From Dimorphilus gyrociliatus (taxonomy: Eukaryota; Animalia; Annelida): a stretch of 64,000 bases of DNA. The notes below the pieces were generated by a model, which worked only from the letters and a program-made list of their open reading frames with translations, ran no database searches and was not told where the DNA came from. Location: positions 3,033,891 through 3,097,890 of the forward strand of contig CAJFCJ010000002.1 of the NCBI GenBank assembly GCA_904063045.1. The letters run 5' to 3'. Each line of letters opens with the position of its first letter. Position 1 is the stretch's first letter. The position numbers and the translations under genes are program-made. Positions 2,149 to 4,022 of the stretch are shown here, one piece after another.

Positions 2149-4022
2149 CTAAATGCTAGATGCTGCAGTGGAGGCGTTTACCTGCTGTTCTTTCCTTATA
2201 TCCTGGGTTATCTGCGTTAAATCTTGAATAAATTGTTGTATTCTTGTCAGCTGTTCGTAGGTGTCTTCTACATGTGGTGTAGCTTGTTTTTGATGTCGAG
2301 ATACTAGCATGTAGAGGTTATGAGTTGCCCTAGGTAAAACAATATGGTCAATACAAGATGCTCTTTTTCAAAATATAGAATGATTTTTATGATATTTGTC
2401 TTATTAACTTACATCTTAATTCGACCTAATAAAAGAGTCTTTTTGGCTGCTGTGTTCTTAATATGGGTCCATTTACTTTCCCATTTTACAGCTTCACTTT
2501 GTGTTTTATCCAATTTTGTTTGGAGCGTAGCTAGCCTATTATTATAATTAAGAATCTCATTATTCTTTTCTTCAATATATCTCAATTTTTTCGTCTTTTG
2601 TTTTTCTAATCTATCTTGATTTTCTTGTTCCCTATTCATTAAATCCTATTAAAAAACAAATTAAAATGATTACAATGACTATTAATAGAAATCTATTGAA
2701 TGTTTCTTCTTTACTTGATGAGTTGTAATGAGTGTATCGTGCCTGGCAAGAATTTCTCGAATTTCTTGAAATTCTTCAGCTGTTTCAACTACTTTTTCCA
2801 TATATTTTTGATATACAAGATGTCTTTCCATTTTTTCCTAACGTTTAAGGGACAGTTGTTTAATAAGTCGAGTACTAATACAAACATATGAAGTTACCTG
2901 TAGTTTCTGTTTCTGATCTGATAATTCTTCAGAGTCTGATTTTAATCTAAGAAAATAATTATATTTTAATTTTTTGAAAATGAAATTTTGTGTTTTAGGA
3001 ATGAACTACAAATAATTGACACTGCAATAGAGGCTTTAAAAGTGTTGATGCAAACATTCAAGCACAAACTGGAAATAAATTAGGTTAAGAAGGATGGGTA
3101 AAGATAGATTAGCAAACGCTCTCTCTTTAAATTTCAACCTTTTTATATCGTTTTCCTTCATTTTGCATATTTGTTCTTCCTCGGATTTCTTCTTTACAGC
3201 TCGAGCTTTTTTAGAATCATTTTCCTGCACACAACATTTAGCATAGTTGATAGAATTTTTACAATAGTGATAGAATATGTTTTCATTAAAATCATCTCAG
3301 TTTGAATCATTTTGAAAAAAATAGCAAAATATTCGACTTCCTAGTATGATTTAGTAAAAAGAAAAGACTGCTTGAAGGCGAATATTATTATTTATTTTTT
3401 TTTTTGTAAGTAAGAAGTAACGGTTTGATCATCTATTAAACTTCTATCCTATTCTCAAGTATACCTTATTAATTCATATTCCTTATTTACAGAAATGTCT
3501 TTTTCAACAGTAGCTTTGCGTAAAGCTCGTCTACGTTTTTCATCATTCTCCTATTTAATCTTGATAAATTGTATTTTTTGTATCAAAGCGAATATCTACG
3601 TACAAACCTTTAAGAATTTATCGAATTTCAATAAAGATTCTTTCAATTGATACTCCTTTCTTTCTAGTTCTTCTCGGCGTTGTTGCAAACTTTCCATTTT
3701 CATTTGAAACTCCTAAATTATAGAAATTAGAAAAGAAAATATTTAATATTGTTATAGACTTTATAGTATTCTGTCGAAAATGTAGCATTAATTAAACTTA
3801 ATACCTCTTTCTGAGCTGCCAGAGCTTGTTCGACTTCTGTCATTTCTCGACGTTTCTCTAAAAGCCTAGTAGCGGGAGTTAGATGATCATCTTCCCGCTC
3901 TGGCATCTTGCTGTAAAGATATATTTTATTAAAAACAGTCGTAAATTTATTGTATTAAATTCTTACATGAGTAATTTATCCTCAAAAGTGTGGCGGAAAT
4001 ATTCATTTAAATCGATAGCCAT
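2149..4022 (-). CDS. CCDC42: Coiled-coil domain-containing protein 42 / CFAP73 family (ciliary), with a pair of mutually exclusive exons at 3465-3550 and 3139-3224
   Basis: MAIDLNEYFRHTFEDKLL|KMPEREDDHLTPATRLLEKRREM...LKESLLKFDKFLK|END... and AAKKTLLLGRIKM|ATHNLY match the DUF4200-containing CCDC42 family. Frame was checked across exons. Confidence 0.88.

Follow-up and report, generated by a model that had tools for sequence, protein, structure and literature searches.

A tandem duplication of exon 3 in a CCDC42/CFAP73 homologue of the annelid Dimorphilus gyrociliatus was confirmed in this study as real, old and lineage-specific among the species sampled. Its two 86-nt copies, referred to here as 3a (upstream) and 3b (downstream), lie on the minus strand of the window, that is, the whole 64-kb stretch of DNA analysed. 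We lean, if only slightly, toward the proposal that 3b is the default exon and 3a a functional alternative exon, and mutually exclusive use of the two copies is probable.

RNA joints and open frames revealed a minus-strand gene of nine exons, with the following features (positions are those of the window):

4022-3967, minus strand: coding exon e0, MAIDLNEYFRHTFEDKLL, with the start codon at 4022; from the open-reading-frame scan and joint 3910/3967 (run X4).
3910-3805, minus strand: coding exon e1, ..KMPEREDDHLTPATRLLEKRREMTEVEQALAAQKE; joints 3910/3967 and 3711/3804 (cut +1).
3712-3608, minus strand: coding exon e2, EFQMKMESLQQRREELERKEYQLKESLLKFDKFLK; RNA joints to 3550 and 3224.
3550-3465, minus strand: exon 3a, the upstream 86-nt copy, ENDEKRRRALRKATVEKDISVNKEYELI plus AG; acceptor used in RNA.
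3464-3225, minus strand: intron between 3a and 3b, 240 nt; retained in the 3a-bearing contig.
3224-3139, minus strand: exon 3b, the downstream 86-nt copy, ENDSKKARAVKKKSEEEQICKMKENDIK plus AG; default in mature RNA.
2946-2898, minus strand: coding exon e4, (R)LKSDSEELSDQKQKLQ; joints 2946/3139 and 2836/2897.
2837-2715, minus strand: coding exon e5; RNA joints and open-reading-frame scan.
2645-2413, minus strand: coding exon e6; RNA joints; its 77 aa served as the query of the homologue search.
2329-2152, with the stop to 2149, minus strand: last coding exon e7, ..RIQQFIQDLTQITQDIRKEQQVNASTAASSI and stop; joint 2328/2412.

The donor of e2 (3608) supplies both 3a and 3b, and the acceptor of e4 is the common acceptor for either copy. 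With one exon-3 copy included, the gene has 936 nt of coding sequence, or 312 codons, and orthologues are about 312 aa long. Exon e0 (4022-3967), which is joined to 3910, was missing from the model in the initial annotation; it aligns with the N-terminus of mollusc and annelid orthologs, and e1 is near-identical to ortholog sequences. The same annotation had joined the pair in frame to a downstream exon starting at 2947. The in-frame joint to e4 is correct, but the exon actually starts at 2946, the AG occupying 2948-2947 (joint 2946/3139).

Downstream of the CCDC42 gene, at about 250-1700 of the window on the minus strand, open frames resemble, as judged by eye, an adenosine-deaminase-type (metal-dependent hydrolase) gene, with the motifs …RSTPRS… and …IDRIGHGTYL…. 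In Lingula (L018:1-1842) and Crassostrea (L019:1-1299), a NIPSNAP gene lies head-to-head with the CCDC42 homologue, directly upstream of it; NIPSNAP and CCDC42 form a conserved spiralian gene pair, possibly with a shared promoter.

Searches and comparisons with the worm gene were done exon by exon, each exon singly. DUF4200 (Pfam PF13863) was identified on e2 alone (38.4 bits against a cut-off of 29.7; E=1.8e-9) and was confirmed in the genome search too, and 3a extends the DUF4200 match weakly, over profile positions 56-82. The best PDB matches of e6 are CFAP73 chains (E=5e-10), the solved chains matched being 8J07_j3, 8GLV_AV and 9FQR_Ho (human, Chlamydomonas and a third axoneme entry). Used as the query against the representative library, e6 returned 223 relatives; the named ones that were checked are 'coiled-coil domain-containing protein 42 homolog' proteins of ~312 aa, with strong conservation from sponges to chordates, and every exon of the worm gene matches mollusc and annelid 'CCDC42 homolog' proteins. 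The earlier assignment of the pair to a coiled-coil segment of a CCDC42-family ciliary gene is borne out by DUF4200 on e2 and by CFAP73 chains as the best solved matches. To judge from its sequence, the gene is a CCDC42/CFAP73 homologue, a FAP73/MIA2-type coiled-coil subunit of motile cilia.

When a mollusc orthologue is aligned to human CFAP73 (8J07 chain j3), the exon-3 segment falls on residues about 90-117, centrally within the DUF4200 coiled coil, and it comprises four heptads. In Chlamydomonas, FAP73 and FAP100 make up the MIA complex beside inner-arm dynein I1 (PMC3628515), and the vertebrate paralogue CCDC42 is required for the sperm tail and for head-tail coupling (HTCA) (PMC6702985). 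The worm genome searched (77.9 Mb, 349 contigs) also contains a CFAP100 homologue (G000:C15:1166295-1166688) and a second, more distant CFAP73/CCDC42-like paralogue with a single exon (G000:C5:3596647-3596955; L001:1501-1809), which is 41% identical over the DUF4200 region.

Both exon-3 copies measure 86 nt, start in phase 0 and have canonical AG/GT ends, and they lie 240 nt apart. Read on the minus strand, 3a is bordered by aaatag/GAGAAT...AATAAG/gtatac and 3b by gtgcag/GAAAAT...AAAAAG/gttgaa. The coordinates (3550-3465 and 3224-3139), length, phase, ends, strand and peptides reported in the initial annotation match these exactly, and its claim that the two peptides are homologous is well supported. 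They are identical at 11/28 residues and reach an ungapped BLOSUM62 score of 52, compared with a mean of -5.2 for shuffles (sd 10.6; z about 5.4); none of 100,000 shuffles attained this score, and the best other 28-aa window in the same coiled-coil gene scored 19. The nucleotide sequences are identical at 49/86 positions (57%) with no indel, the composition expectation being about 33%. As the score lies far above both shuffles and other windows, coiled-coil composition does not account for the resemblance. The pyrimidine tract at the 3a acceptor is poor, and the 3a donor reads GTATAC; the donor of 3b, GTTGAA, is used despite looking no stronger than the 3a one.

Since 86 nt is not a whole number of codons, the 312-aa protein is encoded only by transcripts with one copy. 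A stop follows after 10 codons when 3b is read after 3a, and after 5 codons when e4 is read straight after e2, in agreement with the previous claim that inclusion of both copies or of neither breaks the frame, one copy giving 312 codons. Read-through from 3a into its intron yields ELIRYT and then a stop, 3 codons on, and the stop-free stretch across 3a is at most 31 residues.

Orthologous loci were compared from the annelids Capitella, Paralvinella, Owenia and Ridgeia, the brachiopod Lingula and the oyster Crassostrea. Exon 3 has a common cassette structure in all six spiralian loci (6/6), with the form ag/GAA AAT GA…A[A or G]/gt and a length of 28 codons plus 2 nt. No second exon-3 copy was found in these six loci at a permissive score threshold, the exon occurring once per gene. 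The check for the pair at other spiralian CCDC42 loci, suggested in the initial annotation, thus gave a pair in 0/6 and exon 3 as a single copy. Since exon 3 is shared by and single-copy in the six loci, the exon is ancient and its duplication is specific to the worm lineage among the species sampled. A TARA metagenome scaffold (L010, 2059 nt) from a compact planktonic eukaryote with tiny introns encodes the closest e6 relative found (71% identity); there, exons 2 and 3 form one fused exon, present once. A 22-nt pattern inside 3a was also compared with metagenome contigs, and its sole match, in a bacterial EF-G gene, was discarded as a chance hit.

Exon 3a scores 61-73 against exon 3 of other spiralians, and identity to Capitella exon 3 is 14/28 for 3a and 15/28 for 3b, 3b being the copy closer to the spiralian consensus. 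Each copy is thus nearer to the Capitella exon, and by a similar margin, than to its partner (11/28). Ancestral S4, A7, V10, K11, K21 and I27 are kept in 3b; ancestral A13, T14, K17, D18 and E26 are kept in 3a and lost in 3b; and the derived residues I19 and E24 are common to both. This residue pattern fits a duplication that took place after the split from other annelids and was followed by long independent divergence. Similarity between the introns flanking 3a and those flanking 3b is at random level, and as the exons nevertheless hold 57% identity without an indel, the duplication appears to be old.

Intron sequence of the same region differs by 4 indels and 6 substitutions between the reference and a 95-99% identical strain (run X1). 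With indels so common in local intron sequence, an unconstrained stretch of 86 nt would hardly hold its exact length. Single changes in 3a create a stop in 17 of 252 cases, and its substitution pattern is conservative. When the 28 differences between 3a and a parsimony ancestor, itself crude, were placed at random, an open frame together with the observed similarity resulted in 0.05% of trials. The dN/dS ratio of 3a to 3b is about 0.52 (NG86, 28 codons), a value that one constrained and one neutral copy would give as well and that, over so few codons, does not tell the hypotheses apart, and dN to outgroups is higher for 3a (0.57-0.62) than for 3b (0.35-0.46). The sequence data are an indirect argument for protein-level selection on 3a through much of its past. 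The exon looks selectively maintained, and its retention of ancestral residues lost from 3b gives the same impression.

RNA evidence came from four runs (X1-X4) in the form of assembled contigs only, which drop rare variants and can neither rank abundance nor show absence. The joint from e2 to 3b was identified in runs X2 and X4 and that from 3b to e4 in runs X1 and X4. The 3b joints span three independent studies, and every complete path seen carries 3b, which is therefore the default exon in mature RNA. The joint from e2 to 3a was identified in run X4 only, the organism's own run, in one contig (record 11) of 382 nt, which consists of 29 nt of e2, the full 3a, the unspliced 240-nt intron and the first 28 nt of 3b. 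The 3a acceptor is recognised by the spliceosome in vivo. Of the depth at the e2 donor in X4, some 25% goes to 3a (73 vs 234), a rough estimate given how unreliable contig depth is as a measure.

X4 contigs cover the 3a-3b and 3b-e4 introns at depths of 73 and 102, and the gene's remaining introns have zero coverage. Genomic contamination as the source of this coverage was rejected on this ground, and the pattern indicates that splicing around the pair is slow or absent. Record 3 of run X1 covers 3139-3342 and is unspliced upstream of 3b. Within the 3a-3b intron, at about 3385-3408 on the minus strand, a run of 12 A is followed by AATAAA; this may be a site of internal priming or intronic polyadenylation, and X1 reads appear to be cut there.

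The joints from 3a to e4, from 3a to 3b and from e2 to e4 were searched for in the contigs of the four runs, which lose rare forms, and none was seen. An abundant and stable e2-3a-e4 mRNA in the X4 sample should have branched the assembly at 3465, and a fair reading is that the sampled RNA contains little or no productive 3a isoform. The RNA samples probably under-represent males and sperm. Among the junctions that the initial annotation had listed for checking, with the e4 start corrected to 2946, 3608 to 3224, 3139 to 2946 and 3608 to 3550 were seen, but 3465 to 2946 was not found in the contigs. Its proposal of mutually exclusive splicing is upheld as regards the tandem duplication and the use of the 3a acceptor, whereas the complete paths in the contigs all contain 3b and no joint from 3a to e4 appears among them.

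A credible though unlikely alternative is that 3a is now non-productive, either as a former alternative exon or as a duplicate that was never fully functional, and that only the 3b protein is made. The 3a acceptor would then capture some pre-mRNA while the 3a donor went unused, and the products would be dead ends, detained or degraded; we give this course of events the same rather low credence. It would account for the sole 3a-containing contig being unspliced downstream of 3a, for X4 intron coverage (73, 102) confined to the introns around the pair and for 3b joints in three studies as opposed to 3a in one, and it is in keeping with the poor pyrimidine tract of the 3a acceptor, the GTATAC donor and the higher dN of 3a to outgroups (0.57-0.62 vs 0.35-0.46). 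In a genome of 31% GC with fast intron turnover, however, an unused exon would be expected to have lost at least one of reading frame, exact 86-nt length and splice sites, and 3a has retained an open frame although 17/252 single changes in it make a stop, with substitutions that are conservative. The GTTGAA donor of 3b is no better than that of 3a and is still used, and rare isoforms are lost from contigs. If 3a is unproductive, the locus would be a clear-cut case of a duplicate exon in decay or in regulatory use.

It is improbable that 3a has a regulatory role, as a 'poison' exon or an alternative 3′ splice site, and tunes the CCDC42 level instead of providing a second protein. The choice of 3a would in this case commit the transcript to a stop-containing form (3a with the intron, or 3a with 3b), a fate to which we assign an equally small likelihood. 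All 3a-bearing RNA seen does contain a premature stop, and in X4 some 25% of the contig depth at the e2 donor leads to 3a (73 vs 234; rough). A poison exon needs no protein-level similarity, however, and 3a has preserved its open reading frame, its precise length and residues typical of the family (END.K..RA..KA..EKD); moreover, neither conserved intronic elements nor RNA structure was found. Chance resemblance of a K/E-rich open frame in an AT-rich intron to the neighbouring exon is effectively refuted, since despite a low-complexity coiled-coil composition and a length of just 28 codons the score is reached by 0/100,000 shuffles and approached by no other gene window (<=19 vs 52), the two exons agree in length, phase and AG/GT ends, 3a reaches 61-73 against spiralian exon 3, and its acceptor is used in RNA.

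Under the reading that we favour, with 3b as the default and 3a as a functional alternative, an ancient 86-nt, phase-0 third coding exon was duplicated in tandem in the worm lineage only. Exon 3b serves as the default, and 3a would be a selectively maintained alternative copy, with an acceptor that the spliceosome uses. Transcripts with both copies or neither run into an early stop and would presumably undergo nonsense-mediated decay (NMD), and a productive e2-3a-e4 mRNA would swap in a diverged coiled-coil segment. The 3a form would most likely occur in a minor cell type or stage, for example in sperm flagella as opposed to body cilia, and the 3a and 3b proteins may differ in function. More tentatively, it is possible that one worm CCDC42/CFAP73 gene makes two versions of the MIA-complex coiled coil through a lineage-specific mutually exclusive exon, e.g., a sperm-flagellar and an epidermal-ciliary one.

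A search for docking/selector RNA helices around the pair recovered only short, weak, AU-rich inverted repeats, and region 3120-3640 folds worse than its own shuffles (z +2.3). A docking/selector mechanism was rejected on account of the weakness of these repeats and a fold less stable than shuffles. Conserved intronic elements were also sought, and none was found. With a 240-nt intron between the copies, steric constraint does not apply. By inference, exclusivity would rest on the reading frame and, presumably, on NMD.

Mutually exclusive exons that arise by tandem exon duplication are a well-known class across many animal genes. Surveys of such tandem-duplicated exons have reportedly been made by Kondrashov & Koonin, Letunic et al. 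and Hatje & Kollmar. Like known cases, the worm pair consists of adjacent homologous exons of equal length and phase with canonical sites, the exon length is not a multiple of 3, and a small structural segment is swapped. Unlike known cases, just one of the two single-inclusion mRNAs is seen here (in contigs), the pair occurs in just one sampled annelid lineage, and no mechanism based on steric constraint, U2/U12 sites or RNA structure is apparent.

The initial annotation had stated that no mutually exclusive exon was known in this family. Our literature search found no report linking the CCDC42 family with mutually exclusive exons (co-mention of 'CFAP73' and the phrase was left aside), and no exon-3 pair was found outside D. 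gyrociliatus among the loci compared. The statement holds to this extent, but it has to be qualified by mollusc X1/X2 isoforms that swap the last coding exon. In NCBI automatic annotation, the mollusc 'CCDC42 homolog' has X1 and X2 isoforms of equal length (312 aa) that differ in a homologous last coding exon, the swap covering residues about 283-308, one helical segment of roughly 25 residues. Such isoforms are annotated in Haliotis, Liolophura, Mytilus, Crassostrea, Ostrea, Saccostrea, Dreissena, pectinids and Patella. The isoform pairs compared (P0202/P0303, P0203/P0309, P0231/P0328, P0338/P0339, P0209/P0216 and others, from gastropods, bivalves and a chiton) were rejected as an exon-3 swap, as it is the last exon that differs. 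The mollusc pair gives the impression of a terminal-exon tandem duplication common to the whole phylum. A second last exon was sought in four annelid loci and in the 64-kb window, each of which has a single copy. The mollusc and worm pairs are alike in being tandem-duplicated exons of the same gene family; they differ in that the worm pair is at exon 3 and in another phylum, and in that the mollusc case is known from automatic annotation across Mollusca. Alternatively used duplicate exons are therefore already on record for the family, though elsewhere in the gene and outside the annelids. In a Lamellibrachia satsuma model (P0229, 397 aa), the piece equivalent to e6 is doubled, with EEKNNEILDYCNQLS… followed by DEKNNEILGFNNQLA…, which suggests another tandem exon duplication that was read through by the annotation.

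Two FAP73-type versions per organism, which the worm candidate would also have, are found in vertebrates, namely CCDC42 (testis) and CFAP73/CCDC42B (motile-cilia MIA complex). Tandem whole-gene copies of the CCDC42 homologue were identified in Capitella (L013:103, L013:3337) and Owenia (P0213/P0285, L015:10450-10927). The Owenia gene pair is 81% identical; the two Capitella exon-3 copies are identical including their flanks and may represent a recent duplication or an assembly artefact. Two versions of the CCDC42/CFAP73 protein arose repeatedly by different routes, and two versions in the worm, if they prove true, would parallel both the split into CCDC42 and CFAP73 genes in vertebrates and the tandem copies found in Owenia and Capitella. 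A real 3a isoform would imply two variants of an inner-arm dynein I1 regulator that differ in four coiled-coil heptads, and would mark these heptads, which by homology pair with CFAP100, as a tunable part of the MIA complex. Vertebrates, Owenia and Capitella duplicate whole genes, whereas the worm duplicates 86 nt, so that the difference between its versions would be confined to four heptads; should the 3a isoform prove real, exon duplication would have given a compact genome the outcome that others achieve by duplicating entire genes.
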